From Dimorphilus gyrociliatus (taxonomy: Eukaryota > Animalia > Annelida), in contig CAJFCJ010000006.1 of NCBI GenBank assembly GCA_904063045.1, positions 4,356,408 to 4,420,407 on the forward strand: 64,000 nt of DNA. Reading direction: 5' to 3'. How positions within the stretch are numbered: the stretch's first letter is position 1; every line of letters starts with the position of its first letter. A program made the translations under genes and the position numbers. Below are positions 857-58,776 of this stretch, piece after piece. The notes under the pieces were generated by a model. That model saw only the letters and a list, made by a program, of their open reading frames with translations. It made no database searches and was not told where the DNA came from.

Positions 857-1951
857 TTAACTTTTATTCTGTTTCTCATTTTCTAATCTTTCTTCAAACT
901 TTGAAAATTCTGATTTATTTATTTCGTCAACTTCATCTTCAATCTGTTCTACCCCAACAACTTCGGGTATGTAAAACTGCAGCATATTTTGTACGCCACT
1001 TTTCAATGTAACCGTTGAACTTGGGCAACTAACACATGAACCTTGCATTTTTAATTTTACTATTCCGTCTTCGAATGCCTATATTTAAATATTCAATACT
1101 TAAAACCGTTTATATTATTTATATTTTTAATTTTCTATTACTTACAACGTATTGTATATCTCCACCATCTTCTTGAACTGTCGGACGTATCCTTGTATCA
1201 AGTAGTTCTTTAATCATAGCTACAGTTTCATCGTCTTCCGGATGTACCTCAGTATCACTAGGAGCTTTCTCTCCGGTATATATTGGTAATCCTGATGCAA
1301 AAAAGTCCATAACAATTGCATATACTTCCGGTTTGACAATTTGCCAATCAATATCTTCTTCTTTTGTTATTGTTATAAAATCATTTCCAAAGAAAACAGC
1401 TTTTACTCCATCTATCCGAAAAAGCAATCTGAAATGATATCAAAGAAAATTGACACTTGAAGTAAAAATCCTACGTTGACATACTTGGCCAGAGGTGAAG
1501 AATGAGCTTCTCTAACATTTGGGAAATCCATTGTTCCCGAGTCTAAAACATCACATCCTGGTAAAAACTTTAAACTATTCGGATTTGGGGTTTCTTGAGT
1601 TTGAATAAACATATATCTTTCTAAAATAAAGAAGTGTTAAACTCTTCGATAAAAATTACATTTCTAGTAAATACTCTGGGAAAAGTTTATTGGTGTCGCC
1701 TTTTTAAAATGATATCCTCGAGCAGATAAAGTCATAATTTGACGAGCTGATGTTTTAGTTCGAATAGATCTATACAAAAAAATTTAAAAAAGTTTGGTTA
1801 TAAGTATTGATGAGATCAGTTAAAATCGTTCTAGGTTTCTCAAGAGTCCCATAATATATAGGAATTTTTTAGAAACTCACTTGAATAGCAGATCACAGAG
1901 AAATCTGGAGGTAACTCTGGTGACTCCTATAACTTGCCTGTAAGCAGCCAT
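857..1951 (-). CDS. NFU1: NFU1 iron-sulfur cluster scaffold, mitochondrial (multi-exon)
   Basis: [37 protein letters not shown] and CxxC motif [28 protein letters not shown] across ORFs 1412..1612, 1119..1427, 857..1048; presequence-like first exon [13 protein letters not shown] from ATG 1951 with GTGAGT donor at 1880. Confidence 0.95.
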
Positions 1952-2378
1952 CTTGATAATAATTGTAAACCTATTTTCGTATTTTTACAAGAACATTTTT
2001 TTGGCGATTTCTGATAAAGCATTGTAAATAATAATATGTTTTATAAATTTATACCGTAAGCTAAATTATTATATCAATCCCGCAGAATATATTTAAGCCT
2101 AATGCGCTACGGAAGTTTGCAAGTGAACTTTTCAATCGATTAACAGAACTTTAATCGATTAATAACTTTTTGGAAGTAGCTTTTTATAATATAATCATAA
2201 AGACACAGAGTTTTAACGAAATATTTGAATATCTAATGTGAAGGTCTTCCGATAATTTTATTATAATTTCTGTCTGTAAAGCTATTTTATTATATGTATT
2301 TTTAAGAAATGTACAGGTTAGAAAACATTATTATAACATTGCGCCTATAATGTACAAATTTGTAAAAATATTAAGTAT

Positions 2379-3314
2379 TTATATCTCTTTTTCATCTAGT
2401 TCAATCATTTCAACATTCTCTTTTTTATTCTCTTCCCCCAGCGTAAATCTCTGAACAACAGGCTCCTCGTTACAACTTTTCTCCGAAGCTATTCTTAAAA
2501 TACCATTATTATCCAAAAAGGAATGCAAATCATCTTCATGAACATCTTTAGGAATGGGAAAAGTTTTCCGTATTCTTCTTTCGCATCTTGCTCCATCTTC
2601 TTCTTTTACAGAAAGCCCGGCTACTTCAACTGTTCCATTTATTAGCTTAACACTTAATTCAGAGGGATCGTATCCTGAGACATCTACTTCTTGTTTAAAG
2701 ATAGACTTATTTTCTATTGTTTTCAATTCGTTACCTCGTTCATTCTCATCATTTTTTAATTCCATTGTTGCTTTGGTATTCTCATAAGATTTAATTTTCT
2801 TCAACTCTTTTTGTTTATCCTCAGTTATTGAGAGAACTCCGCTATCATTGAATGATATCTTCACATCTTCTTTTGAAACATTTTTAGGTAAAGTAAAGCG
2901 ATGATACATCTGCTTCGTGCTAAAGTGTCCTTCTTTTTCTTGACAAGAAGAGCTAGAAACCTCTACGGCTCCATTAGCCATCTTGACTTCAACTTCTTCG
3001 GGATCGTAATCTTTCAGGTCCAGACTTTGAGAGAAAGTTCTAGCATTTCCTCTTTTTTTTGTTTTGTTCCATTTCAGTTGTTTTCTCCTATTCAAATCAT
3101 TGTAACTAATTTCATCATCTTCCGAGTCAAATTCAATGTAGAGGGGGGAATAAAAAGCCTTTCTTTTCTTATTCCAACCTCTCCTAGAAGTAGGAGATCG
3201 TCCAAAAGATGATCTAAGCAGCCTTGGTGAATCTTCGTTGTAGAACGGATAAGTAGTAAAAAAATCGTCGAATCCTGTATTAAATTCTACAAGTTGTTTG
3301 AAATAACTATCCAT
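2379..3314 (-). CDS. Small heat-shock protein with two alpha-crystallin domains (p40/Tsp36-like), intronless
   Basis: Two ACD copies: FSQSLDLKDYDPEEVEVK...FTLPKNV...NDSGVLSIT and FKQEVDVSGYDPSELSVK...FPIPKDV...DNNGILRIA. Confidence 0.92.
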   Translation of the reverse strand: MDSYFKQLVEFNTGFDDFFTTYPFYNEDSPRLLRSSFGRSPTSRRGWNKKRKAFYSPLYIEFDSEDDEISYNDLNRRKQLKWNKTKKRGNARTFSQSLDLKDYDPEEVEVKMANGAVEVSSSSCQEKEGHFSTKQMYHRFTLPKNVSKEDVKISFNDSGVLSITEDKQKELKKIKSYENTKATMELKNDENERGNELKTIENKSIFKQEVDVSGYDPSELSVKLINGTVEVAGLSVKEEDGARCERRIRKTFPIPKDVHEDDLHSFLDNNGILRIASEKSCNEEPVVQRFTLGEENKKENVEMIELDEKEI

Positions 3315-3435
3315 ATTGATTGCGACGAATTTCGTGTTATAGTCGATCTATTCGAAGTCTGAGCTTTTCCATTGTATATATCTGATATATATATACTGTA
3401 TATATGTTAATTTTGGGGAAGGTTTAAACTGCCTA

Positions 3436-3464
3436 GAATTTTCTATCTTTTTCCAGAAACTTCT
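3436..3464. promoter_or_regulatory. Heat-shock element array upstream of the sHSP gene
   Basis: In-phase nGAAn pentamers: GAA 3436, TTC 3441, gap, TTC 3451, GAA 3456, TTC 3461; ~120-150 bp upstream of the ATG, with a TATA-like AT run at ~3375-3405. Confidence 0.75.
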
Positions 3465-3934
3465 TCAAACAAAGATGGCGCCACAATCACATTAAAAAAA
3501 TATATTCTTTAAATGTTAATTACAACTTTAAGTATATTGATATTTTAGCCATAATATTCAATTAAAGCAATGTAATAATTCACTTTATATCTGGAGACTA
3601 AATTTCCTTGTCTTAAATAGATACGTTGTGTAGAGAGCATCAAAAATATTGGATAACTACAAAATTAAAAAAAAGATACCACTAATTAGTTTAGATAAAA
3701 TATAATGCATGATATTATTAATTAAAAAATTAATAAAAGATAGTGAAATAAGAGAAAAGTTAAATTTTATAATATAAATATGCTGCAAAAAAACATTTCC
3801 AATGTGGTGTAGTGTCTTCATTTTACGAATTGATTTTCGTTTCAAAATATTAAAAAGGTTCCTGGAATTTGAAATATCTGTGAAATTACTGATTATACAA
3901 GTTTATTTTCAATCAGAAGTTAAATTAAACAGCA

Positions 3935-4861
3935 ATGTCGACCCAAAGCAAACATGAAAAGAAAGGATTGATGGACTATCTTCCAACTTACAGGTATAAA
4001 AAAAAGCCTACGTGACAACTCCGACATTTAGCGCTCTTGAGCAAGTGTAAGGAAAGTATACAAGTATTCTACAGAATGCTCTATAATTCAATAGGTTTTC
4101 TCAACCGGCTCATCTTGCGGCAGCATCGTCTGCAATTGTTGCTATGTCGGTATATTACAACAGAAAAGGATCCGTTAGACTTGATTATCCTTCCACTGCC
4201 CTATCAGTCACTCACCTATTGACAACTGGAGGATGGTTTGGAACCCAAATCTGGGTAACATTCGTCGCGGGTATTGTCTAAACTGAAAATGATAATTATA
4301 AAAATTCTGAAAATATTTTCATTTTTAGGATTGACTATGTTCCATAATCTACCCAGGCATTTATTCGGCGATGTTCAATCAAGACTTTTCCCTAAGTATT
4401 TTTCTTTTGGAGTGTTGAGCAATGCAGTTTGCATATGCACATACTTCTTACATCATTCGATAAATAATCTGGAAACCAGAGGTTTTATCCAGGTGATTTT
4501 TAAATGTTCCTTTATATAAATTTAATAGCAATATACTGTATAATTAATATTTTTATTTAAGATTTCTGCCATGGGTTTATCGCTGCTATCAAACTGTGCA
4601 AATCTTCTTTACTTCCTACCCGCTACTCGTGAAGTGGCCCTGAGAAAAAATAAGATTGAGAAAGAATATGGATTAGATACGCACGTTGGACCTGTTTCAC
4701 AAACACAATTTGACGAGTTGTTTCAAAAAGAACCTGATTTTAAGAAGCATTATAAAACATTTATGAGATATCATGGCTATTCTGCCCTATTGAACATTGT
4801 TTCCTTGGTTGGAAGTGTTGTTCACTTATACTGTCTTGCTGGTAACTTAAGCAGCTTTTGA
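3935..4861 (+). CDS. TMEM205: Transmembrane protein 205-like (multi-exon)
   Basis: Spliced reading gives [38 protein letters not shown] and C-terminal FMRYHGYSALLNIVSL, characteristic of TMEM205. Confidence 0.88.
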
Positions 4862-5548
4862 ACAAGATTCGGGTGGAAATTACCTTAGTATTTACCTTTA
4901 CAGAGGAGTCTTAAGTTATCAACCTATAGATTTAAACAACGATTGTTCACAGTTTTACGAATTTTCTAATAGTTGTAGTGCATTCAGAGACTATGAAAAG
5001 CTTAACATTAATAAATATATTGTGAGTTTGTGAAAAAGAAACTATGTCTTTAGTTTTTTTTTGCTATAATTATCAAAATTTTCTTAGTTTCGGTTTTTTC
5101 AACTTTCATCTTTTATTCAAAACTTTAAGTTTTACAATCATTTCCAGGTCCTTACTCTATTAGCCATTTCTCCTTGAAGTTGAGGACTCTCTTGACTTTT
5201 CACAATCGTAAAACAGACGATAGGTAAGAGAAAGAGAGCCCATTCTTTCAGAATGAATCGGGAAAGAAGTAATAATATAAGCCAGTGATGACATAGGCTA
5301 TAAAGATTTATAGGAAAAATATGAAGTCAAAATGTTTTTAATAGTGATGATTGGCTACATTTAGTTATTTTTTGAAAATTTTTTTTCTTTCCCTTTTCAG
5401 TTGCGTTTTAAGGTCTTTAACTTTGATAAGTTATATAATATGAGATAGACAAATACATTTTTGATGAAAACTGAGTGTATTGTGTTTTCTTAGTTCCTAC
5501 TGACATTTCGCTCTTTCTCATAACAAAATTTTAACAATAGTCATTCAA

Positions 5549-6742
5549 CTAGGCCTCTAGTAGACCTGGACGGTTGCCCTTTCTATTATTTCTTTCACCA
5601 GGAAACGAGCTTCGCTCTCTAGACTTGTAACCATCATGCAGTTTTCTCCTCCTTATAACAGGTCTCATTAAATAATCTTCATAGCTAGAGGAGGAAATAT
5701 GGTCTCCTTGTTCAAGCATTGAATTGATTAAAGTAAACTGCATATTTAAATTGACATCGTTCTTTTCTTCTAAACCACTTTTCAAACTATTTATAATTGA
5801 TTCAAACACTTTTCCATTCTTTCTATAAGATTCGGGTAAGTCCTCCATCAGAATACACGATTTAATCGAGGCTAAGCAATCTTCAAACCTGCCTAGTTCA
5901 ATGTTAACTTTTAGTTTCGTATTAACGTATGCAAGTGGCGTTCTTCGACCCTCATTAACAATTTGCATTGATAAAATTTCTAATGCAGTTTCTGGCGAAC
6001 CTTGCAAAAGAGCTAGCTCGGCTGCATAAACCAATGATCTTATAGAAACTGATGATCCCAATTTTTTAGACTCTCGCAATATGGATAATAAAACTTTGAA
6101 AGCTTGGGGTGTGTTTAATTTCAAACAAGCAGCTGCAGCTATTGTCACACAATCCATAGGATATTTAACTCCATTTAAATTCTTATCTGCTATTATTTGC
6201 AGTGCCTTTAGACAATCTTCATAAAGTTTACTATTGAATAGCAAATCCATAAGAATTACAAAGCTAGACATTTGATCGAAGAAACCATTCAAATTTTTAT
6301 CATTAAACAATTCCCAAGCAAATTGTGGATTATTTAGTACGTGAGCTAATCTCATTACAATTGGCCCAAAATGAAAAGTGCTAAATCTTAATTCTTCCGA
6401 TTGTTTATGATATTTATTAATCATTATTTTCGTCAATTCTAAGTCATCTACTCCTTTTGCTGCATATACTATTGTTTTTAGGTCATCAGTGAAGATAGTT
6501 TGTTCATTTTCAGACTTTAGATACTCTCGCATTCTGTCCCCAAATTTGGTTTGAAGGTCTCCAAGACGATGTAGCGTTTGGTCTCTATGGCGCAAATAAT
6601 TTTCCAATCCAAGTATTTCACCAGAAAATAGATAACGTTTGCTTGAATTGCTAACAAAATTTGTGTTCAAACTAGCATTAAGAAGACTAAATTTGCTTGC
6701 CGCAGACCGCAAAAAATTCACGTGCTTCATAGCGGTGGCCAT
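5549..6742 (-). CDS. PTCD2: Pentatricopeptide repeat-containing protein 2, mitochondrial (intronless)
   Basis: IFTDDLKTIVYAA, RFSTFHFGPIVMRL, GFFDQMSSFVILMDLLF match PTCD2; first ATG (MATAMK) at 6742. Confidence 0.85.
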   Translation of the reverse strand: MATAMKHVNFLRSAASKFSLLNASLNTNFVSNSSKRYLFSGEILGLENYLRHRDQTLHRLGDLQTKFGDRMREYLKSENEQTIFTDDLKTIVYAAKGVDDLELTKIMINKYHKQSEELRFSTFHFGPIVMRLAHVLNNPQFAWELFNDKNLNGFFDQMSSFVILMDLLFNSKLYEDCLKALQIIADKNLNGVKYPMDCVTIAAAACLKLNTPQAFKVLLSILRESKKLGSSVSIRSLVYAAELALLQGSPETALEILSMQIVNEGRRTPLAYVNTKLKVNIELGRFEDCLASIKSCILMEDLPESYRKNGKVFESIINSLKSGLEEKNDVNLNMQFTLINSMLEQGDHISSSSYEDYLMRPVIRRRKLHDGYKSRERSSFPGERNNRKGNRPGLLEA

Positions 6743-11977: not shown

Positions 11978-14379
11978 ATGGATAACATCTCTAGCAGTTC
12001 TACTGATGCTTCAGGTGATGAGGATGTTTTGGAGAGCGACATAACTGTTTTTAAATATCCAAACCAAGCTTCAATTATCTATAGGGGACTGGAAAAACTG
12101 TATAAAGACCGGCAGTTTACCGATGTAACTCTAGCTGCCGGAGGTCAGAAATTTTATTGTCATAAAGCCATTTTAGCAACTTCTTGTCCCTATTTTATGA
12201 CTATGTTTAATTCCTCCTTCAAAGAAAGTTTAAACGATGATGTTGCGATCTCAATTGAAAGTAGCACACTAAAATCAATACTAGACTTTATTTATTCCGG
12301 AAGTGTTCAGCTAGACGTCGAAAATGTGCAAAGTATATTATCAGCTGCAAATTTTTTGCAGCTAAATGCACTTAAAGATGGATGTGCAAAATTTATGGAA
12401 AAACATATTACGGAAGTCAACTGTCTCGAAACCTACTTTTATGCTAAAGCACACGAATGCCAATCATTAGCCCACCAGTCTCTTATGCTTTCTTGTAAAC
12501 ATTTTACTGAAATATCGAAGAAAGATAAATTTTTGAACTTACCTTTTGATAAGGTAATTGATATTATATCACGAGATGAATTAAATATCGACAATGAAAG
12601 AATAGCTTATGAAGCCTGTTTATCTTGGATAAATCAAGATCTTCAAACTAGAAAGCAATACACAGTTGAATTAATGCAAAACGTTCGTTTTGCCAATCTT
12701 GAAGTTTACTATTTCTGTGATAATGTTGCCAACAACGAATTATTACAACAACATAATCAAATAAGAACCGTTGTAAAACAAGTTGAATATTACAATTTGG
12801 TTAGAGAAAGAAAGCATGAAATTGATTTAAATTCAGTACCAAGAGCTGGAATGTCTTATGAACAAGGCGTGTTAATGGTAGCGAATCCTTATCATACAAT
12901 GTATCCAGATAGGGATGGTGTTGGTGATGGTATTGATTGGTTGAATGTGAAAACAGGAAAGACTACACAAATAACTAGTTTATCAAATCCTCTTTTCCTA
13001 CCAGGTAGTTTTCAATAACTGAGAAAAAAAAGAAAGTAAATATTTACAAATTTCCAGGTGTTTGCGTTACTGGTGATGGTCATATATGTATTGCTGGTGG
13101 AGCTATTAACAGAGGAAAACGATTTGGTATTTCATCAAAAAATCACTATTTCTTTTTAGCTTTCAAATGTTTCAATAAATTTTATTTGTACAGCTAAAGG
13201 AGACTTTAAAGTTTCAAAGAAAATCCAAATAATGTACAACAATACAAGATCTCAATATTTAGACTTGATAGTATGCGAAGAAGAGCTACAAACTGAACGC
13301 GCTATGTTCAATTTATGTCTCCTTGACGGGTATGATAATGCATTTTGCACGTTCTTACTTATCTCATCATCTATTGATATCATAAACAGACACATTTTTG
13401 CTGTTGGAGGTCATACTAATGATGGCGTTACATCGAGCGTCGAAAGTTTTGTTATAGGTTGGCTTTAAAGTATTTTTATCATATTGTTAGCTTTCTAAAT
13501 CTAAAATATAGATAAAACAAGTATTAAGAGTACAACTCGTCGTTCTCTGCCTCGACCATTGAGAGGATCAGCAGCAGTATCTTTTAAAGGCGCGCTGTAT
13601 GTCTTTGGTGGGGAAGATGGTGATCAAGTATTTAAAAGCATTTACAAGTGCTAATATCCTTACTGTGATTATATTAGTATAACTGATGACAACAATAAAT
13701 ACCTTTTAGATACGACTTAGGGCGAGACGTATGGCGTGAAGTTTTGTCATTGAAGTGTGCAAGGAGCTTAGCCGCGTGTGTTGTTTATCGTAACAAAATC
13801 TGGATAACAGGTTTTTATCAGGATAAATATAACTCTTAAAAGTCTTTATAAGTTATTTTTAAATAATGATTAGGTGGTTGCTCTACCGTAACAAACAAAT
13901 GGAAGACCGAACATATGGCAACAAATTGTTTGAGTAGCGTTGAGATATATGATCCCATTACAAACAAAATTACTTTTGGACCAGAATTACCTTTCGATAT
14001 ATGCGGACATGGTAATTAAATATAATAGTCAATGTGTTGAGTAATTCACATATCTAATTTATTAAGGAATCGTCAAATATGCAGAAACTTTATGGATAAT
14101 AGGCGGAGAACAAGCTAACGGACTTGTTGCTGGCATTTACAAACTGAAACAGTTACAGGACGACTCATTCTGTTGGGATGAAGGTCCAGAATTAAAGGTT
14201 TGTAATGAATCATTGTTTACATTTCAATAACGTATTACGATTTGTTTTTATTTCTACAGTTGCCAGTCTCCACATTTGGGTATTTTGTTACTAATATTTC
14301 AAAAGATTATTCATTTTGGACGCAAGAATCAGATAATAAGGGCTATTATATTGTGAAACCGTATTCTAATATATACTAA
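11978..14379 (+). CDS. BTB-BACK-Kelch (KLHL family) Cullin-3 adaptor, multi-exon
   Basis: FTDVTL..FYCHKAILATSCPYFMTMF BTB, BACK helices, then short exons with Kelch GG motifs (ICIAGG, FAVGG, LYVFGGED); last exon 14260..14379. Confidence 0.9.
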
Positions 14380-47362: not shown

Positions 47363-47648
47363 GTTTGAAAATATGAATTATTCTATCTGAGGGAGAAAAA
47401 TTAAAATATTGGAGTGGAAGAGTTGTTCAGGATAGTATACAATACTAACAACGGAAGCGGAAATTGCAGAACATACCGGGCTTTCACTAAGTTAAATAAT
47501 TTTCAAAATCTAGTCATTTCTTACTTAAAATTTGAATTTTGCACTCTTCTAATGAAAGGTATACCACCATAACATATCACTTATGTAACTATTGATTAAA
47601 TGTGATGTGCAAATTAAAACTTTTTAAAAAATCGCGCAGTTCTTTAAA

Positions 47649-49656
47649 ATGGCAACAACATCGCGGCTCATCAAAAAGCTGGATGAAGCAGTTATAAACC
47701 GTATAGCCGCCGGCGAAGTAATACAAGGTACGCCCAACCCATTTTTAGAGAATAAACGCTCACTTTCCCGTATTGACAGGGCCCTGGAATGCTGTTAAGG
47801 AAATGATAGAAAATTGCCTAGACGCCAAAGCTACTAATATATTAGTGGTCGTAAAACAGGGAGGCCTAAAGTTGATTCAGATTCAAGATAACGGGAAAGG
47901 CATTCATAAATGCGACATGGACGCTGTCTGCGAACGATTTGCTACAAGTAAATTAACCACGTTCGACGATTTGTCATCAATTTCCACTTATGGCTTTAGA
48001 GGGGAAGCTTTAGCAAGCATAAGTCACGTAGCACATATCACAATTACAAGTAAAACTGCTAATTCTCAATGCGCCTTCAAGGGTTCTTATTCTGACGGCA
48101 AATTAAAGGAGCCTGTTAAACCATGTGCAGGTACCCAAGGCACACAAATAACTGTTGAAGATTTATTCTACAATGTCCCTACAAGGAGGAAAGCTATAAA
48201 AAGTGCCACAGAAGAGTATAATAAATTATACGATGTGATCAGCAAATATGCTATTCACAATTCTAAAACTACTTTTACATTGAAAAAACATGGAGAAAAT
48301 GCTGCTATTCGCACTCAATCAGGTAGTACAGTCGATAATATTCAGAATATTTATGGAGGAGAAGTTAGTAGAGAACTGATAAAGGTAGAACATCACGACG
48401 AACAGTACAAATTTAAGGTACAAGGTCATGTTTCGAATGCCAACTATAACGCCAAAAAGTGTATACTTTTACTCTTCATCAATCATCGTCTTGTCGAGTC
48501 ATCAGCCTTGAAGAAAGCATTGGAAAGCGTTTACGCCAATTATCTCCCTAAAGGAAGCCACCCGTTCATGTATCTAAGTTTGGAAATTATACCTCAAAAT
48601 GTTGATGTTAATGTTCATCCAACAAAGCACGAAGTTCATTTTCTACATGAAGAAGCCATAATTGAATCTGTGCAAAGAGTTTTAGAAAACGTTCTTCTCG
48701 ATTCAAATAAAAGTAGGACTTTTCTAACGCAAGCTATTCTCCCCTCTTCGTTTGGCGTAAGCCAAAAAGAAGAAGAAAAACCAAAGGAAGTAGAAAAAAT
48801 ATATGATCATAATTTAGTGCGAACTGATAGTAAAGAAAGAAAATTAGAATCTTTCATCTCGTCACAGTCGTCAGATATTATAACCTCGGATCAAACATGT
48901 AATGGTACGAAGAAAGAACGAAAAGTGCATCTCAAGAGTGTTTTGAGCCTTCGTGCAGAAGTTGAAAGTGACTTGAACATCAATTTGAGAGAGATATTCA
49001 AGGAACATAAATTTGTTGGTTGTGTGGAGAGAAAATTTTCTTTAATGCAGCACGCGCAAGAACTTTATTTGGTGGACGTTTATGAATTAAGTCGAGAGCT
49101 ATTTTATCAGATTATGCTTTATGACTTTGGCAATTACGGCTCTATTTCTTTAGAGGAGCCTGCTAATATAATAGAATTAGCTAAAATAGCTTTAGACCTT
49201 CCAGAGATAGGCTGGACTATAGAAAATGGACCTAAAGTCGAATTGGCGCAACAGATCGATATTGTTCTTCGATCTCATGCTGAATTACTTTTTGATTATT
49301 TCTCATTGGAAATCGATAAAGAAGGAAATATAATATCACTGCCTTATTTATTGGAGAACTATATACCACCACTCCAAGGTCTGCCTGTGTATATTTTGAG
49401 ATTGGCGTCAGACGTTGACTGGACGACAGAGAAGGAGTGTTTTGAAGGAGTATGCAAGGAAACTAGTGACTTTTATGCAATGGGTAATGGCTATGAGCAC
49501 TTAGATCAACATCAAGAAAAAGATTGGAGGTGGATGACTGAATATACTCTTTTTCCAAATTTCAGAAACACATTACTACCAACAAACAGTATGGCAAATC
49601 ATCTTATCAAATTGGCAAGCCTACCAGATTTATATAAAGTATTTGAAAGATGTTAA
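47649..49656 (+). CDS. MLH1: DNA mismatch repair protein MLH1 (single intron 47728-47779)
   Basis: NRIAAGEVIQ, EMIENCLDA, TYGFRGEALASIS, VDVNVHPTKHEVHFL, C-terminal DLYKVFERC. Confidence 0.98.
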
Positions 49657-50009
49657 TAGTCTCTTTTATTTTCAAGTGTACAAATCACAAAATTGTTTAC
49701 CTTTTTTCCAAGCATAATCGGCAAATTTTGATATAAAAAGTCTAGTTCAATTTAAAATGAATCAATAATCTTATCTGAACAGCATACATACAACAGACAG
49801 ATAAGTGCTTTGCAGTTTGAATATTGATTGAACACTCCTATCTAAACGTTCAATAACTCGACCTACTTTTAATACATAAATCTATCAGGGGAATTGTAAA
49901 CTTCTAAAACTACATACATGCAAGTACAAGACGTATAAGTAGTTTAAAAAAACATTTAGTAGAAAATTATGCATAGGTTTTAAAGGGTCAATCAGTTCAT
50001 GATACTGAA

Positions 50010-50372
50010 TCAGACGTTAGCTTGCTCAGTGAGAAATTGTCGAATCTTGTGTAGTAGTTCTTTCTTTACGGTATCCGGAACAAGTGCACGACCTTTCGGC
50101 GTCACCTCTGCGACCAAATCATCCACTGATACCGTTTCTATTCCACGTTCTCTAATAACTTGTTTACAATAAGCTCGTACCTTCTCTCTCCAGCCACATT
50201 CGTCAAGCCTAGATATATTTTTAACAATTATTATAAAATCGCTCGATTGTTTTGAAACAACAATACAAAATACCAACCTCATGCGAAGTAATCTCTTTAG
50301 TTTTTCCTTTTCACCAGTTTCTTCCAATTTTTGATTAATCGTTTCACGGATTATAAGCTCTCTATCACCCAT
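50010..50372 (-). CDS. ENY2: ENY2/Sus1 (SAGA DUB and TREX-2 subunit), one 69-bp intron
   Basis: [56 protein letters not shown]; intron 50277-50209. Confidence 0.95.
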
Positions 50373-51215
50373 TTTTCTATTCAAGTTATTTAATAACTGA
50401 AAAAAGGTTTATTCGTAAATAAAAAAAATAATTACACAGCTGCGCTATTCGATTCGAGAATTGCCCCTATTGATATAATCTTGCATATTTCAATTTTTAG
50501 AAAAAATCTAGTAAAATAATTTAATGCTTTTACTTGATTACTAAGTAATCAACCGATTCTTATTAGTAAAAATATTACTGCGTCTCAGATAATTAAAAAT
50601 CAAATCTACTTACGGTCCCGCGTGCCAAATATTTCTCGTAAAAAACGAACTTGTTGTGTACTCGATTTCGTAGTGAGCGCGCCAAGTTTTTTCCCCCTTT
50701 ACAATATTGCAGTTTAAATTCGGCGCGACACGAATCGAATACGCACCCCGCTACAGCTCTTTGCAGTTCGAACCGAACATCTTTACGTTATCGTCGTTTT
50801 CTGTCGTTTTCGCGCTTTGACTAGCCGATTTTTGCAGTTTTGGTAAGCGATTATCTAATCACTCAACGTTTATAGTGTGAATAGCAACTTTTTGCTGTAC
50901 GAAATAGTAAATAATCGTCGTTTGTTTTGCAGTATTGCGCTGCGACAGCAGCAGGTATAGTGCGCCATTGTGCAGCTCCCGCCCAACGGTCGCGTTCTTT
51001 AAAAAATTTCTCCCGAAAGTATTACAGACGTCCCATTAATATCATTATTCAAATCAACAGCTGCTTATAAAAGTATTGCAGCTGTTTCCACCGTGCCTTG
51101 CAGCTGCCGCATGTTGAATACCGCGTTCACGATCCTCGTTCTATTCAACTGTAACACTGCAATTTATACTGCAATTCTGTTCATTACAGGCTGTTTCCCA
51201 ACCCGCATTCAAATT

Positions 51216-52459
51216 ATGGATTCCAAAGTTCTCGAAGAGGTAATGAAATAATTATTAGTATTTTTGTACTAGGCGACTACAGTGAACATTTGTACGTATA
51301 CAGATCGAACAAAAGGCCAAGATGAAAATTAACAAGCAGCACCTACGAAAACTCGTTACGGATCATTTAACGATGGCCTGTAAAAGCGCTTTGCCTGACG
51401 AAAGAATGTTTACGGTTGAAGCGCTTGTCGGAATAACCTTGTCATCGAAGGAAGTTATGCTAATTAACGTTAAAGAAAACGTTTCAAACCAACTGACCAA
51501 GAATGTCGCAAAAGACAAACGCAATATGTCTTCGTCGGTCGACGACGTGTCAGAGGCGCTTAAGAGGAAATTCGAACAGTACGTTTATTTATTCTCGGCC
51601 CCCCCAACTTAAAACAGACTTGGTTGTTTTTTCTTTCAGTGAACCGGCTAAAACGTCGTCGAAACGTAAATCGGACAAGATAAAGAGTGAACGATCTGGT
51701 TCACCAGTAGTTAAACGCTCTAGGGTATCTCTGCCGCCCCAGCACCGAATCAGGAATTCTTATGACCCCCCTGAATTGGATGCTTTAAGGAAATTAGCGA
51801 CACCTAATGAAGCTTTAACAGGATGGTATTCACAGGTTTTACCACAATCTTTGGTCCTACCTCCATTTCTTAATGGATCATTCCAGGTATGTTCTCTTTC
51901 TAGGATAAAGATATACTAGATAGCGATATCTAGTATATCTGTGTTTTTCCCCTCATTGTTGTTGTTTTGTTCTTTTGCAATGTCGGTCTAAAAAGAACCG
52001 AGACATTGTTAAACGTTGTGAAAACTTGTCTGAAACAAACCAGAATGCTGCCCGCCCTTCTCTCCAACATCCTATGTTCACCTCGAGGCAATATCCGGGT
52101 CTTTCAGAGGATGATTCTTCCCCAAGAAACCAGTCCCCGCAACCTGACGATGATAAATCAGCTGAAGCTTTGGATATGACAAAACCTGATGACTATGAAG
52201 AAACGGACGTGAATATGAATAAGACAACGCCATTGAAACTTTTGGCCCAAACCGTAATTGAACAGGTGATATTCCTTTCCATGACCCCTCCATACCGTCC
52301 TTTCACTGAAAAAATAGCGGTATGGAGGGTGAGTTACACTCCAGGAATTTTAATATTTTAATACGATTTATTTTGGTTTTCAAAAAAAAGACTACGCGAT
52401 CGAACGGCGGCGAAGAGATCAAGAGGAGTTCGTCATGCGAGCCGATTGTCAACAAGCAG
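51216..52459 (+). CDS. ZF gene B common 5' coding exons: unnamed N-terminal domain + linker
   Basis: Exons 51216-51239, 51304-51578, 51640-51886, 51996-52265, 52391-52459 join in frame; last donor CAG|GTGTGT is phase 0. Upstream non-coding exons suggested by donors at ~50842 and ~50954. Confidence 0.8.
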
Positions 52460-53892
52460 GTGTGTTCCTCGGCCTTTGCCGAAGCGATAATAGCTTTGGA
52501 CGCGAATTTTTGCAGTAAACAATAGGCAGGTGACTAATCTAGACATAAAAATAAAAAGAGAGCGATAAGTATTTATTATCTATCTATGACTGCAAAGATT
52601 CACGTTTAAACACGTTATCTGATTTTAGTGGCTATATGCATCGGCATGCAATATAGAGTAGCCGCTTGATTTGCTTTTCAAATTGGACTCGGCTGCATTA
52701 AAATTGCTATAGAATTTAACAATAGCGGCGGCTGGTGGCGGCGGTGGCGGCAGTTTTTTTTTACAAGAGAGAGCAGCAGCCTGCACCAATTTATACAGCA
52801 ATGGCCTATTTGACAGTGTGCAGCTGTAAAGATTGCTGAAGGGCGGGGCGAGATTTTCTTCTCTCTTGCAATCTATCTACGACTCTATCTCTCTTTTCCG
52901 TATTTATTTCTCTTTTATTCCTGCCTGCCACGCCGTCTGTCCCTCAGCAATTTTGTCAGTATAGGGGGCAAAGAGAGGGTAAAAATATTTAAATGAAGCA
53001 ATTACTGTTTAATATAGATAAAGTGTAATTTTTACCCTTCTTCCTTATTGTATATAACTTATATACAAAGAATCATAAATATCTCTTTGCCGCCCCTCTT
53101 TTTCTTTATCTGTATCACTCTCTATCTTTTATATATAGAGAGCGAACAAAAAGAAAAAGAGAAAAAAAATTCCAGCATGTCGGTGAAAGTGCGGTGGCCT
53201 GCGTTGCGTTCTATTCATTTCTCATTTTACAAAAGCATGCCTTCTCCCTTTACGGTTTTTTTTATTTATTGCGCATCTTGTGGACGTTTTTACGTTGTTC
53301 TTTTGTTCTCTCGAAATTCTTTAAACCTACATTGTTTTTATTATTATTTTCTTGTTTATTTATTTATTTATCTTTAGTTTCCTAACCATAACTCCTCACT
53401 ATTCTTCTTCTTCTCCCTTTCTCATTATTACTTTTTGTCGACCTTTGTTGTTGTTTTTGTTTGTTGTTTTTTACAACATTCGCATATGCAGTTGCGCATT
53501 TAACATTCCGCGTGTTTGTGGTATATATCCATATACATACTTGCGTACATGTATTGTATGTTTATTCAAAATATGTGTTTTACGTAAATACAAACACATC
53601 AATGTAGCGATATGCATACATAATAGGTACATGTTATATATGCATGCATTTAAATACATAAATATGTACAGTTATTGTGTATATATTTATACGCACATTT
53701 TCCTATCGCCTACATTTATATACATCTAAGCGTATAGAGAGACATATATATATATACATACAATGCCTAAACTATGCTGAATAGGAAAAGTGGAACAGAG
53801 AGCACGCGTAGCGTGCTGCTTTCGAACTTTGTACGCGACACATCAGTCACACTGCTGCATGCCTTGGCCCAGTGCCAGCGTCACTGCAAAAA

Positions 53893-53929
53893 GGGCGGGG
53901 TGTTTACGAGGGAAGGGAAAGGGACAGGG
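53893..53929 (+). other. G-quadruplex-forming motif in the long gene B intron
   Basis: GGGCGGGG...GGGAAGGGAAAGGGACAGGG fits G3N1-7 x4, with two extra G-runs just upstream. Confidence 0.55.
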
Positions 53930-54406
53930 TACGCGGTATATTAAAACTATTTGTGAAAGTAACTTGTTATTTATTATGACTCTTAGAATGGGCTGGAGGG
54001 TTAACGCTGTAAGAGTGGGTTTCAAATTTATTACGTTTGGCAATTAAAGAGGGCTATTCTGATTACATTTTGGAAAGTAGATCGGCGACATCTACAGGCC
54101 TACACAGACAAATCGGCCCACATGACTGAGAAGGGAGAAGAGGGTGTAGCGTTCGAAGGTTAGGGGTGTCGATGTTTCCCTCTATTTTTTTGCTGTTCTT
54201 TGCTTACATATTTTGCATGGCAGTGTGTTTATGGTCCGTAACCATACGGTGTTTATTTCATGCATAACTGATTACTCGACTGCACCTGTTGGATTGGCAG
54301 TGTTTCCTTTTCATTATATATTCCCCCCTCTTTATTTCTGCCTTTTTGTCGTACTGTACCCGCGCTGCGGGCTGGTTGTCTTTAAGGCGTTCGTTTTGTC
54401 GACCAG

Positions 54407-54637
54407 GTGCGTCCAGGATGTAGGAATGAGTTGAGTCGTCGACGACGTAACGTGCGATGTTCAGAATGCGGTCGGGTATTTTTTGATAACAATACTTTGA
54501 GGAGGCACGCTCTTATACATAAAGGAATCAAACCATTCAATTGTTCGAAATGCAGCAAAACTTTCCGACAAGCCGGCTGCTTACAACGCCACCTCGCCAC
54601 GCACAAAGATGTCAACAACGCTTCACGTAGATGCTAG
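54407..54637 (+). CDS. ZF cassette B1 (terminal exon, 2 C2H2 fingers)
   Basis: Acceptor CAG|GTG, phase 0; CSECGRVFFDNNTLRRHALIH-KGIKPF-NCSKCSKTFRQAGCLQRHLATH; own stop at 54637. Confidence 0.85.
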   Translation: MRPGCRNELSRRRRNVRCSECGRVFFDNNTLRRHALIHKGIKPFNCSKCSKTFRQAGCLQRHLATHKDVNNASRRC

Positions 54638-54776
54638 AAATAATAACTTCAAAAAAATGCAAAAAACTATAAACTATTAACCCTTCTCTTAAATAATCTA
54701 ACGCTTTCAATGTTAATTCGCATAAACTGAACCAAACGCAAACAAACCAAAAACAAACACTTGACCGTATATTTAG

Positions 54777-55241
54777 AATGAGAACGACAGCGAATCGGAA
54801 GGACTTTCGGGAGATTTGACAAACATTTGCCCTCAGTGTGGAGTTACTTTATCAACTAATACCGCCTTAAAACGGCACATGCTCATCCATGACGGCGTGA
54901 AACCCTACAATTGCACAATCTGCGAGAAGAAGTTCAGACAGAAAACGGACCTGCAGCGCCATCTTTGTACACATACTAAGAAGTATCCATTTAGCTGCCC
55001 GCTCTGTGATTTCAAGTGCGTTGCAAGACATTCATTAAAGGCTCATGGCAGAAACAAGCATAACATGCCGGATCTCCACTATCAGGTGGTTCCGGCTAGT
55101 TTGGATGAACTGGTACCAATGACTGATTATAATTTCGAAGCGGGGCAAATAAAGAAAGAGGATGATGAGGAAGAGTCTGTACTTCCATCTGATCAAATTG
55201 ACTCGAATCCGGAGACAGATTCGGCTCAACATCACATATGA
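54777..55241 (+). CDS. ZF cassette B2 (terminal exon, 3 C2H2 fingers + acidic tail)
   Basis: Acceptor TAG|AAT, phase 0; CPQC..HMLIH, CTIC..HLCTH, CPLC..HGRNKH; stop at 55241. Confidence 0.88.
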   Translation, partial: NENDSESEGLSGDLTNICPQCGVTLSTNTALKRHMLIHDGVKPYNCTICEKKFRQKTDLQRHLCTHTKKYPFSCPLCDFKCVARHSLKAHGRNKHNMPDLHYQVVPASLDELVPMTDYNFEAGQIKKEDDEEESVLPSDQIDSNPETDSAQHHI

Positions 55242-56578
55242 TACGGTTGATTATTTCTGAAGAAGGGATGGAAAAGGGGGAATAAGAGAATTATAGATCT
55301 GGTCAAGTTCCTTAGCCGTTAGTCTTATTATCTTTAAAATTATCTCAAGGTTTATTCACATTAAAAAAAAAATGTTTTACAAATTGACTTTGGCATAGTC
55401 ACCCTAAGTGCCTTGGTAAACTTTGCAAACAGTAAAAATTTGAAAAAAAATTTAGTGATAAAAAATTAGTATAATATGGCTGCAAATTATTATTTTTTTA
55501 ACGTTTTGTGATATATTATGTTTCATAAACAAATGTACATAATTGGTCGTAGTGATAAAACGTTATTCTGCACCTTACACGTGACTTTTCGCCATTTTCT
55601 CATTTACTTTTTAGACGTATGTTAATCCATCAGTTAGAAACGCTTGTTAACTTATGCAAATTGTGCAATATTCCTTCCAAAGTTACAGTTCTTTTACAAC
55701 TATGCATTTTTTTTGCGTGTTCATTTTAATCTGGATATAAATGATTCTATATACATAAAGAAAATACTTGTGAAATTGTATACCAACATGTATGCCTACT
55801 CGTATTCTTATTCCACATCAAATGATTATTCTTTGATTTTTGATTAATAAAAGTTATTGAAATATTAAAGTACACCATATTAAAAACTTTTCAATACTAC
55901 TCGCCATCTATTATCCAAAAAATTGACCGATAGATGGCATTTCATTACAATCTTAACCGTTTCGTTCCGTAAACCGCATGAGGTAAGTGGGTTGGTGTGT
56001 TTTTGTTCCATTTTCTCGTAACTTAAGCCTACTCGGCTACTGTTAATTAAATTAGCGATTAACTAAGATAACAAACTTTCGTAAGACTTGTTCAAAGCAA
56101 CTTTTTTATGTTTGATTCGTGATGAAAAATGACTTTTTTGACGGTAAACCAGAGCTACAAACTTTTCAAGATGGCGGCTCAAGTTGGCGCCTTCACAAAC
56201 GGGCCTTTGGCCGGTGACAAAGCAAACACTACTGACACGCTTTACTCAGTGCCAATTCTCTTTTAGTTTAAGTTTGTGATATATTTTGTGGCAAACATTA
56301 CTTTTCGACGCCATAAACAATATAACTTTTAGTTTGCTGAGCGGTCTGTCTCAATCACCTAAAATATATTGCGCAGGTAAACCATTCATCATTGTTCAGT
56401 TGGCCTTCTTTCTTACTCGCGTTTTGAATAAGTCTTGGCTTGTTTGCACGCAATAGGCGCCGAATAGGATTTGTTTATCGACGCAATTTTTTTCTCAGGC
56501 CTATATAGTGCTCAAGTTTACTTGTTCAATACGTATCTACATACTTGTTTGGCCTGTTATCTAGGTACACTCACGGCC

Positions 56579-58776
56579 ATGAAGAACATTCCGACAAATT
56601 CTTCTATACAAAGTTCTTTTATTGAACTTGTTCGAAAATTTTGCTCCAAGGTGTTTGCTGACGAGGACTGCCATGTCCAAGGTCTTCTAGCTTTTACCCT
56701 ACCAAAAGAAAGAGTAAGATTTCATTATTTCTAATGTATTTTAATTTGAATAACAAGCATCTTCTAATTGGTTTCAAAAATGTACTTCCTATAATTTTCT
56801 AGGTCGTTCTGGTAAATGTATCACAGGAGATAAAGAATTTACAGACTCCCGTATCGAACTTCTCCGATAAGATTCCGATTAGCAACATTACAAAAATCGA
56901 ACCTAAAACGATTAATCAACCGATTATCATTCATCCGATTCCCGTTTTGGACAGCCTATCCTCTTTACGTCTCCCAAGCTCATCATCTTCCAGCATATCA
57001 ACAAAATCCAAGTAGATACCTCAGTTTTTATGCGCCTAAAAATACTTATAGACCCTTGTAATTTTCTTAAGTGTTATCGACTCGATCCAACCTACCACAA
57101 ATTCTGTCAAGAATAGACGAAAAGGACAGCCTAAGAGACGAAAATCAAATGATTCACCGGCTGTGTTCGAAGTTCCATCACAAGTTCCTCTGCAAAGTAG
57201 TTACAATGCCAAAAGAACCAAAGTTGAGGCGGACAGCAATGCCATTGTGGTTGGTAGTGAAAGCGTTTCGTTTTATCAGTTGTTCCTAATCGGTAGTTCT
57301 GTTTGATTTTAGAGTAGAGAGAGTACTTCGGATTCAGATGGATGGGACAATATTGATTCAAGGAAGGAGGTAAGCATCATTTTACAACATTACAATTGGC
57401 AGAGGTGGTTAACTACTGTATAAAAATTCCCTTCCTTCCCTCAATCCCTTAAAAAATTTTTAATAATTCCAATAATTTCGCTTTTTAATATAACTTTTCT
57501 TTCTTTCACGCGAAACTGATAGAGTTATAAATCGAGGATATGGTAAGTCTCTAACAAGGAATGCTTAAGAAATATTAACTTATTCCTATATAATAACCGT
57601 TTTTATAATAAAAACTATATATATACAATATCTTTTTTATTACCATTTTGCATCTCTGTAAAAAAGTCTCACTGTAATCTCATCTATATATACTATATAT
57701 ACATATGCATGGTTTATTTTTTACTTACCCTTTACTTTTTATATATATATACATATATCAGTTATAATCAATATTTTGGTTCCTGCTTACTTATATTTTT
57801 TATTGAAACTATTATTCTAAAGCATGATCGAATAGAAGAATTTTGTAATTGTTTATAATTTGACGATGTTACTAACTAGAAGTCATAATACAGGTTTCCG
57901 TAGAAGATGAACTCTATAAGAAAATAACGAAAACAGACAGCAATAGCAATCTAATCGCTTGGCCGAGCCCACAAATCGACGAATCAGATGGGAGTTCGAC
58001 GTTGAATGATTCGAACACTGAATCAATATTTGCTCCATCTCCTAAAATGGAACCAATTCTAAATGAGAGAGGTAGTCGCGATCTTTGTCCCGGGGCATTT
58101 CCTAAATCAAATTTTTTTCATTAATATTGCATTCTTCCAGGCCGAGTGGAATGTCAAATTTGCCAGAAGGAATTATACGATAAATCGTCGTTAAATCATC
58201 ACATGTTGATTCATAAAGGTATAAAACCATTCAAGTGCCCCATTTGTCACACAACTTACAGACAAAAGATAACTATGCAGGTATAGTCCAAAGATTAAGA
58301 AAAAAGTCTATTATTTATAAAATAACATAAAAACAATACAGCGTCATATGGCTACTCATTTTAATGTGGATAAAAAAGCTTGCGAATTGTGCGGTTACAA
58401 GGACAAGTCCCAGAGAAAAGTGTTCATGCACCGGGTGAAAGAACATGGTCTTCCTATATCTGCAAATACATTTTCAGATCCAATGCCAGCAGATACGGCC
58501 ATGACCGTGCGACAAACGACATATCCAGTAGCAATGCCGGAAAAGTTATCCTTACAGATACGTTATCCAGACGGTAGACACGATATCGATATCACTATAC
58601 CAGATTACCCAGGTTCAGAAGAAATGCGTAACAAGTTTGCAGAAAAAGAGTCCCAGGCAGATGAAAGTGATCCAGAACAGATGGTCATTGATTTAAAAAA
58701 TTCAGATCGCACACCACCAGCAAGGGTTCCCATACGCATGCAAACTAGATCAGGAGAGAAAAAAAGCACTGGGTAA
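56579..58776 (+). CDS. ZF gene C: divergent copy of the N-terminal domain + linker + 3 C2H2 fingers
   Basis: Exons 56579-56713, 56803-~57011, ~57071-57250, 57313-57370, 57894-~58071, 58141-58280, ~58342-58776; CQICQKELYDKSSLNHHMLIH-KGIKPF-KCPIC..RHMATH, CELC..HRVKEH. Confidence 0.82.

Follow-up and report, generated by a model that had tools for sequence, protein, structure and literature searches.

Gene B of the annelid Dimorphilus gyrociliatus appears to combine one common front half with two alternative sets of C2H2 zinc fingers. The gene occupies positions 51216-55241 of a 64-kb window (the whole stretch of DNA that was analyzed, whose numbering is used throughout), and we assign a probability of about 0.58 to the reading that it is one transcription unit encoding two factors, one consisting of the front half plus the fingers of a cassette named B1, and the other of the same front half plus the fingers of a second cassette, B2. 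The products of Gene B would be putative transcription factors of the C2H2 type whose N-terminal domain has no name. In the proposed mechanism, the donor after position 52459, at the end of the last common exon, would be joined to either the B1 acceptor at 54407 or the B2 acceptor at 54777. The first product would carry the front half followed by two fingers (with the helices DNNTLRR and QAGCLQR), and the second would carry the same front half followed by three fingers (TNTALKR, QKTDLQR and ARHSLKA) and an acidic tail. Both splice joins, 52459-54407 and 52459-54777, were inferred rather than observed as junctions.

Two finger cassettes behind a common donor

The five common coding exons of Gene B, delimited by eye and with a script, total 885 nucleotides (nt) without a stop codon, so that the donor after 52459 is in phase 0, as had been proposed in a preliminary description of the locus; the public gene model DgyrCDS5313 uses the same frame. 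This donor is strong, with a score of 6.6 on the generic matrix by which splice donors were scored, and most Gene B donors fall between 3 and 6.6. The B1 cassette (54407-54637, + strand) is an open reading frame (ORF) lacking a start, which contains two C2H2 fingers and ends with a TAG stop (54635-54637). Its phase-0 acceptor reads ttttgtcgaccag followed by G at 54407, and an in-frame TAA is found 21 nt upstream. The frame is open only from 54386 and contains no in-frame ATG ahead of the fingers; therefore, B1 is translatable only if it is spliced to an upstream coding exon. The B2 cassette (54777-55241, + strand) is likewise an ORF without a start; it encodes three C2H2 fingers followed by an acidic tail and is closed by a TGA stop (55239-55241), and its phase-0 acceptor, tatttag/A at 54777 (here and below, the slash marks the splice boundary), has its AG within an in-frame TAG. 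These coordinates agree with the earlier description of two phase-0 acceptors, each followed by its own stop. The chance of two phase matches is about 1 in 9; with the conservation of both cassettes as coding sequence (see below), the pattern goes beyond chance.

The C2H2 fingers, previously counted as two in B1 and three in B2, were confirmed by Pfam, since PF00096 was matched in B1 (E 1.6e-11, 44.4 bits) and in B2 (E 4.5e-13, 49.3 bits) against a cut-off of 25.2, and by a motif scan. In the seven residues preceding the first His, the helix of finger 1 reads DNNTLRR in B1 and TNTALKR in B2, a difference between first fingers that the preliminary description had already pointed out, while that of finger 2 reads QAGCLQR and QKTDLQR, respectively, and that of the third B2 finger ARHSLKA. 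The two cassettes have unlike recognition residues at positions -1, 2 and 3 in finger 1 and at positions 2 and 3 in finger 2, and the B1 and B2 isoforms would probably have different target preferences. B1 and B2 resemble each other more than any other cassette (52% identity, E 2e-19 in BLASTP; 27 of 49 residues over the core of two fingers) and look like the products of a local duplication of one cassette.

Conservation was evaluated against L002, an 18-kb Logan genomic contig (SRR23372229) from a related lineage, which was found via the ORF P0152 in the exon 2 search and aligns to window positions 47620-57511 with 86% identity. The ratio of nonsynonymous to synonymous substitution rates (dN/dS) was 0.13 for exon 2 (with an unusually low dS of 0.07), 0.05 for exon 3 (dS 0.56), 0.04 for exon 4 (52044-52265; dS 0.66), 0.09 for B1 (dS 0.13) and 0.03 for B2 (dS 1.07). 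In B2, 55 of the 65 changes fall in third positions, and its finger region shows one residue change versus 27 third-position changes; in B1, six of the eight changes are synonymous in the finger frame. These low ratios show that purifying selection acts on both cassettes as translated sequence. All the changes in B1 lie within the first 31 codons (the first 93 nt), and no change is found in its last 45 codons (dS 0), in the stop or in the 13 nt that follow. Given the third-position differences of 28-36% in exons 3 and 4 and in B2, the chance of finding these 45 codons unchanged is about 1e-7. In addition, identity reaches 100% over the 34 nt leading up to the B1 acceptor and 93.6% over the 139 nt that separate the cassettes. 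Constraint of this kind on the 3' half of B1 and its flank is typical of a regulated alternative exon, although it is circumstantial, as dS is also low in exon 2. No stable structure was found on folding the 3' half of B1 with the spacer (z score +1.97); therefore, the constraint on B1 and the spacer more likely acts on linear motifs. The 52459 donor and the following 14 nt are identical in L002, and the ORF reading through this donor contains there a 1-nt indel and unrelated residues, which means that the read-through is not conserved as a coding end. At L002 positions 13094-13096, aligned to 54431-54433, there is an ATG where B1 has TTG (Leu), eight codons before the first Cys; B1 could in principle have its own start in that lineage, and this ATG is not conserved.

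The domain encoded by exon 2 places Gene B within a family. BTB/POZ is absent from the common exons, and no significant Pfam family was found in the four ORFs covering all of them but the 8-codon exon 1. A phmmer search with the exon 2 domain retrieved 264 representative relatives at E<=1e-3, those with a source name belonging to two annelids, Paralvinella palmiformis and Helobdella robusta, and at least 12 paralogues are present in the D. gyrociliatus genome at E<=2.5e-4. The relatives share an N-terminal module of about 60 residues, with the consensus L..LL.DT.TLLCKNGL.Y...F.VEALIGITLD...VFLVNIKE, to which Gene B exon 2 fits, and C26, G43 and T45 are invariant in an alignment of 41 sequences. 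In the AlphaFold model, residues 2-29 form a helix and residues 35-61 a beta-hairpin, with a mean predicted local distance difference test score (pLDDT) of 80. The domain has no PDB match by sequence or fold, and Foldseek gave nothing significant, its best hits being weak MADS/MEF2-like ones (E ~0.5) that serve as a lead only. The domain and the fingers are found in one chain in P. palmiformis KAK2146938.1 (P0035) and in P0008, the latter on a 1,245-nt contig of the size of a messenger RNA (mRNA), and some database relatives (P0007 and P0016) have the domain without fingers. One D. gyrociliatus paralogue, L006 (G000 C5:4084700-4094699, 1028-6639), has a single N-domain exon ending in ..TKQ/GT, followed by three start-less finger ORFs (3633-3959, 5637-6071 and 6367-6639), each with its own stop; other paralogues in this genome have one finger region.

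In summary, the joining of one front half to two finger ends is supported by the fact that neither cassette has its own start and both match the phase of a single upstream donor, by the family proteins with fingers in the same chain, and by the layout of L006, with one front and three finger ORFs.

Cassette processing, public annotation and rival explanations

The spacer between the cassettes (54638-54776, + strand) is 139 nt long and A-rich, with AATAAT and TATAAA hexamers, and it is either an intron or, as part of the B1 mRNA, the 3' untranslated region (UTR) and poly(A) region. Three ways of ending the B1 mRNA can be envisaged, all of which would yield the same two kinds of protein. In one of them, B1 would be the last exon of its mRNA, which would be polyadenylated at a separate site within 54638-54776. 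In another, B1 would be a 220-nt cassette exon (54407-54626) spliced to B2, with a frame shift leading to a stop five bases past the join (..NAS-Q-stop, from C+AA and then TGA), so that the inclusion of B1 would give the B1 fingers and its skipping the B2 fingers. Finally, only the choice of acceptor might vary, both mRNAs ending at the same place downstream of B2. In L002, the TGA after the join is lost through a synonymous change in the first codon of B2 (AAT to AAC), which would make the tail 27 codons longer; therefore, the exact stop of the cassette-exon option is not conserved. In the preliminary description, the two cassettes had been taken for terminal exons that exclude each other, with a poly(A) site in between, and no convincing donor had been seen inside B1. 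The candidate at 54627, CAC/GTAGAT, is indeed weak (score -1.65); however, the public model DgyrCDS5314 uses it, and the absence of a convincing donor is only a matter of judgement. As the public model joins a donor inside the B1 tail to B2, the terminal-exon mechanism may be wrong, and exon skipping may have to replace it.

The public annotation divides the locus into two models. DgyrCDS5313 (P0158, 321 amino acids) has the start and frame of our Gene B model and differs from it in the exon 4 acceptor (52044), in the exon 4 donor (52329) and in reading through 52459 to a TAG at 52523-52525. DgyrCDS5314 consists of MSTTLH plus B2, its residues 7-160 being 100% identical to B2. MSTTLH corresponds to 54609-54626 (+ strand; ATG..CAC, in a frame other than that of the B1 fingers), directly before CAC/GTAGAT, and the annotators therefore placed an intron at 54627-54776. 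The B1 fingers have no coding annotation in the public proteome. Protein searches were made with the exons one by one or as separate alignment rows; a word search with B1 alone matched no protein, and one with B2 alone matched only DgyrCDS5314.

Several of these facts, together with others, weigh against our reading of Gene B. The locus is annotated as a protein with no fingers (DgyrCDS5313) plus a separate one (DgyrCDS5314), and no public model joins 52459 to either cassette. The annotation pipeline weighted transcript assemblies 10 to 1 over ab initio models (PMC7854359), so the intron at 54627-54776 may rest on RNA, or it may equally derive from an ab initio first exon. In the word search with all exons, where proteins of 267-849 amino acids were visible, no protein combining the front half with B1 or B2 was on record. 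A phase match by itself carries little weight, its chance being 1 in 3 for each cassette, and B2 could be translated without the front half from the ATG at 54609, which has A at -3. Finally, the Paralvinella gene has a single finger cassette within 10 kb, and the architecture is not universal.

The main rival, which we hold to be unlikely, builds on that ATG. Here, B1 would be the regular finger exon of Gene B, attached to 52459, and B2 would give the finger-only protein of 160 amino acids represented by DgyrCDS5314, with 54627-54776 spliced out and with expression from an internal promoter in the large intron or of B2 as a second ORF. DgyrCDS5314 has exactly such a structure, the A at -3 suits a start, and the ATG, the donor and the acceptor are all kept in L002; moreover, the near-invariant blocks of the large intron described below could be a promoter, and large introns of this species contain regulatory peaks (PMC7854359). 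However, the weak CAC/GTAGAT donor speaks against it, DgyrCDS5314 could be an ORF-picking by-product of a partial transcript or an ab initio prediction, and the conservation around the ATG is uninformative, as the whole block is invariant. The phase of the B2 acceptor, in turn, equals that of the 52459 donor, and the B2 frame opens exactly at this acceptor. According to the genome paper (PMC7854359), D. gyrociliatus has neither operons nor spliced-leader trans-splicing, and this speaks against reading the locus as polycistronic.

The remaining alternatives fare worse. It is improbable that the public annotation is right as it stands, that is, that DgyrCDS5313 ends without fingers by reading through 52459 and that B1 is an untranslated leader of DgyrCDS5314. 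Both are deposited models, an AATAAA at 52549-52554 follows shortly after the read-through stop, and the relatives P0007 and P0016 show that the N-terminal domain can exist without fingers, but this would leave B1 with two intact canonical fingers, a dN/dS of 0.09 and substitutions that are silent only in the frame of the fingers, while the read-through peptide is frame-shifted in L002 and the donor it ignores is strong (6.6) and invariant. There is similarly little to be said for both cassettes being finger-only products, devoid of the N-terminal domain, that start from a small exon hidden in the 1.9-kb intron. This option lacks independent support, and the few conserved ATG..GT candidates (53177 ATGTCG/GTGAAA, 54231 ATG/GTCCGT and 52801) have weak donors, scoring -0.5 to 1.5 compared with 3-6.6 for most Gene B donors; no strong candidate for a small start exon was found in 52460-54406. 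Least credible of all is a single five-finger protein in which B1 and B2 are always joined in frame. A phase-0 GT is available at 54611 (GAT/GTCAAC), and the 139-165-nt spacing is near the usual size of Gene B introns, but this donor, with C at +3, scores -4.5, the annotated 54627 donor shifts the frame, and B1 retains its own stop. The in-frame join was rejected because of the quality of the 54611 donor.

Common exons, the large intron and neighboring genes

All the common exons are on the + strand. Exon 1 (51216-51239) encodes MDSKVLEE and ends in a phase-0 donor, GAG/GTAATG; its start is also that of DgyrCDS5313, and it is 100% identical in L002. Exon 2 (51304-51578) encodes the unnamed N-terminal domain, with one long helix and a beta-hairpin, and exon 3 (51640-51886) a basic, disordered linker. 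Exon 4 (51996-52265) has an ambiguous acceptor, 51996 in our model and 52044 in the public one, both in frame, and the segment 51996-52057 is invariant in the comparison with L002. The public exon 4 donor at 52329 (GTGAGT) adds 21 codons (52266-52328), and L002 has in this region a 5-nt deletion and unrelated residues. Exon 5 (52391-52459), the last common exon, ends in the phase-0 donor AAGCAG/GTGTGT. The region 50611-51660, which includes the 5' UTR, exon 1, exon 2 and intron 2, is 92-100% identical to L002, pointing to strong nucleotide-level constraint across the whole 5' end of Gene B.

The large intron (52460-54406, + strand) has 1,947 nt, compared with 61-125 nt for the other introns of Gene B, and it contains three non-coding blocks that are near-invariant in L002: 52497-52862, 53185-53284 and 53780-53879. 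The first block shows only three differences in 366 nt, against an identity of 56-85% in the neighboring intron sequence. It occurs once in the genome and matched no Rfam family, and it includes an AATAAA as well as a GC-rich run with T9 after it. The other two, of 100 nt each, are 99-100% identical to L002, and the palindrome GCACGC-GTA-GCGTGC is found within 53780-53879. These two blocks could be enhancer or internal-promoter elements; the genome paper of D. gyrociliatus located regulatory peaks, from the assay for transposase-accessible chromatin (ATAC), in unusually large introns (PMC7854359). A hairpin at 52486-52619, 27 nt past the 52459 donor, has 40-nt arms, a folding energy of -34.7 kcal/mol and a z score of -3.5, and the few changes of its 5' arm in L002 keep or improve the pairing (A-U to G-U, U-G to C-G and G-U to A-U). 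This hairpin may be an element controlling splicing or 3'-end formation. An AT/AG-rich palindrome with a perfect stem at 53093-53164 gave sub-threshold matches to several microRNA (miRNA) models, the best with 28.7 bits against a gathering score of 96, which are probably low-complexity noise. Searches of Rfam at gathering and loose thresholds yielded only such sub-threshold miRNA-like noise, on AT-rich palindromes, and a repeat search for docking/selector-type RNA pairing between the intron and the cassettes revealed no convincing complementarity.

With regard to its neighbors, Gene B is preceded by MLH1 (~48000-49655, + strand) and ENY2 (50010-50384, - strand), both recognized by Pfam tags on the L002 copy. 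Gene C (56560-58776, + strand) contains a further copy of the N-terminal domain and terminates in three fingers, the second of which is interrupted by an intron; therefore, the finger cassette at 58146 belongs to Gene C and not to Gene B.

Known systems with exchangeable fingers

In Drosophila, the lola, fruitless, broad and tramtrack genes combine common 5' exons encoding a protein-interaction domain, BTB, with alternative 3' exons, each with its own few C2H2 fingers and stop, and a single gene thereby yields factors that prefer different DNA sequences. To our knowledge, nearly all studies of such exchanges of finger sets behind an unchanging front half concern insect BTB genes. The account of fruitless in PMC3969260 includes alternative 3' exons A-D and isoform-specific motifs, and a reference cited there attributes to lola 19 factors produced through alternative splicing. 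The analogy with broad, fruitless and lola drawn in the preliminary description stands for the gene layout, each Gene B cassette carrying its own C2H2 fingers and stop, but not for the shared domain, which is not BTB (it has no Pfam match) and is predicted to be a helix plus a beta-hairpin. Gene B differs further in being an annelid gene, known here from DNA alone, and in having only two cassettes, which lie 139 nt apart. Because of this short distance, its switch may be frame-shifting exon skipping and not a choice of terminal exons.

L006 resembles Gene B in that the same unnamed N-terminal domain precedes several finger ORFs without a start, each closed by its own stop; however, it is a separate gene, its domain is 37% identical, its cassettes are spread over 3 kb, and it is likewise known from its DNA layout alone. 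P. palmiformis KAK2146938.1 has the N-terminal domain at its very start and two to three C2H2 fingers near its end, but with one finger cassette within 10 kb, and the family proteins there are uncharacterized and hypothetical. Two further likenesses concern B1 itself. As a skippable exon of 220 nt, it would not be a multiple of three in length, so that, as with frame-shifting cassette exons, its inclusion would switch the C-terminus, and its raised synonymous and flanking-intron conservation is that of regulated alternative exons. In contrast to cassette exons elsewhere, both outcomes in Gene B are predicted to be productive DNA-binding modules, none being targeted for decay, and the use of the 54627 donor is known solely from the public gene model. 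We put forward, as a tentative and rather doubtful proposal, that this annelid family evolved the lola/fruitless design independently and that the near-invariant, frame-shifting exon B1 of 220 nt is the switch of Gene B.

What appears new here, plausibly and with partial support, is the swapping of fingers, in the lola/fruitless manner, behind an annelid front domain other than BTB. The proposed reading of Gene B would also correct the public annotation, in which the locus is now represented by one protein without fingers and one without the front half, and the B1 fingers are missing. The exchange of fingers behind an unchanged front half multiplies transcription-factor specificities in a compact manner. 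If the reading is true, this design would have evolved more than once, the second case being an unrelated protein family of an annelid whose genome measures 78 Mb, and Gene B, with its two isoforms and short introns, would be a small system in which to ask how the splice choice is regulated.

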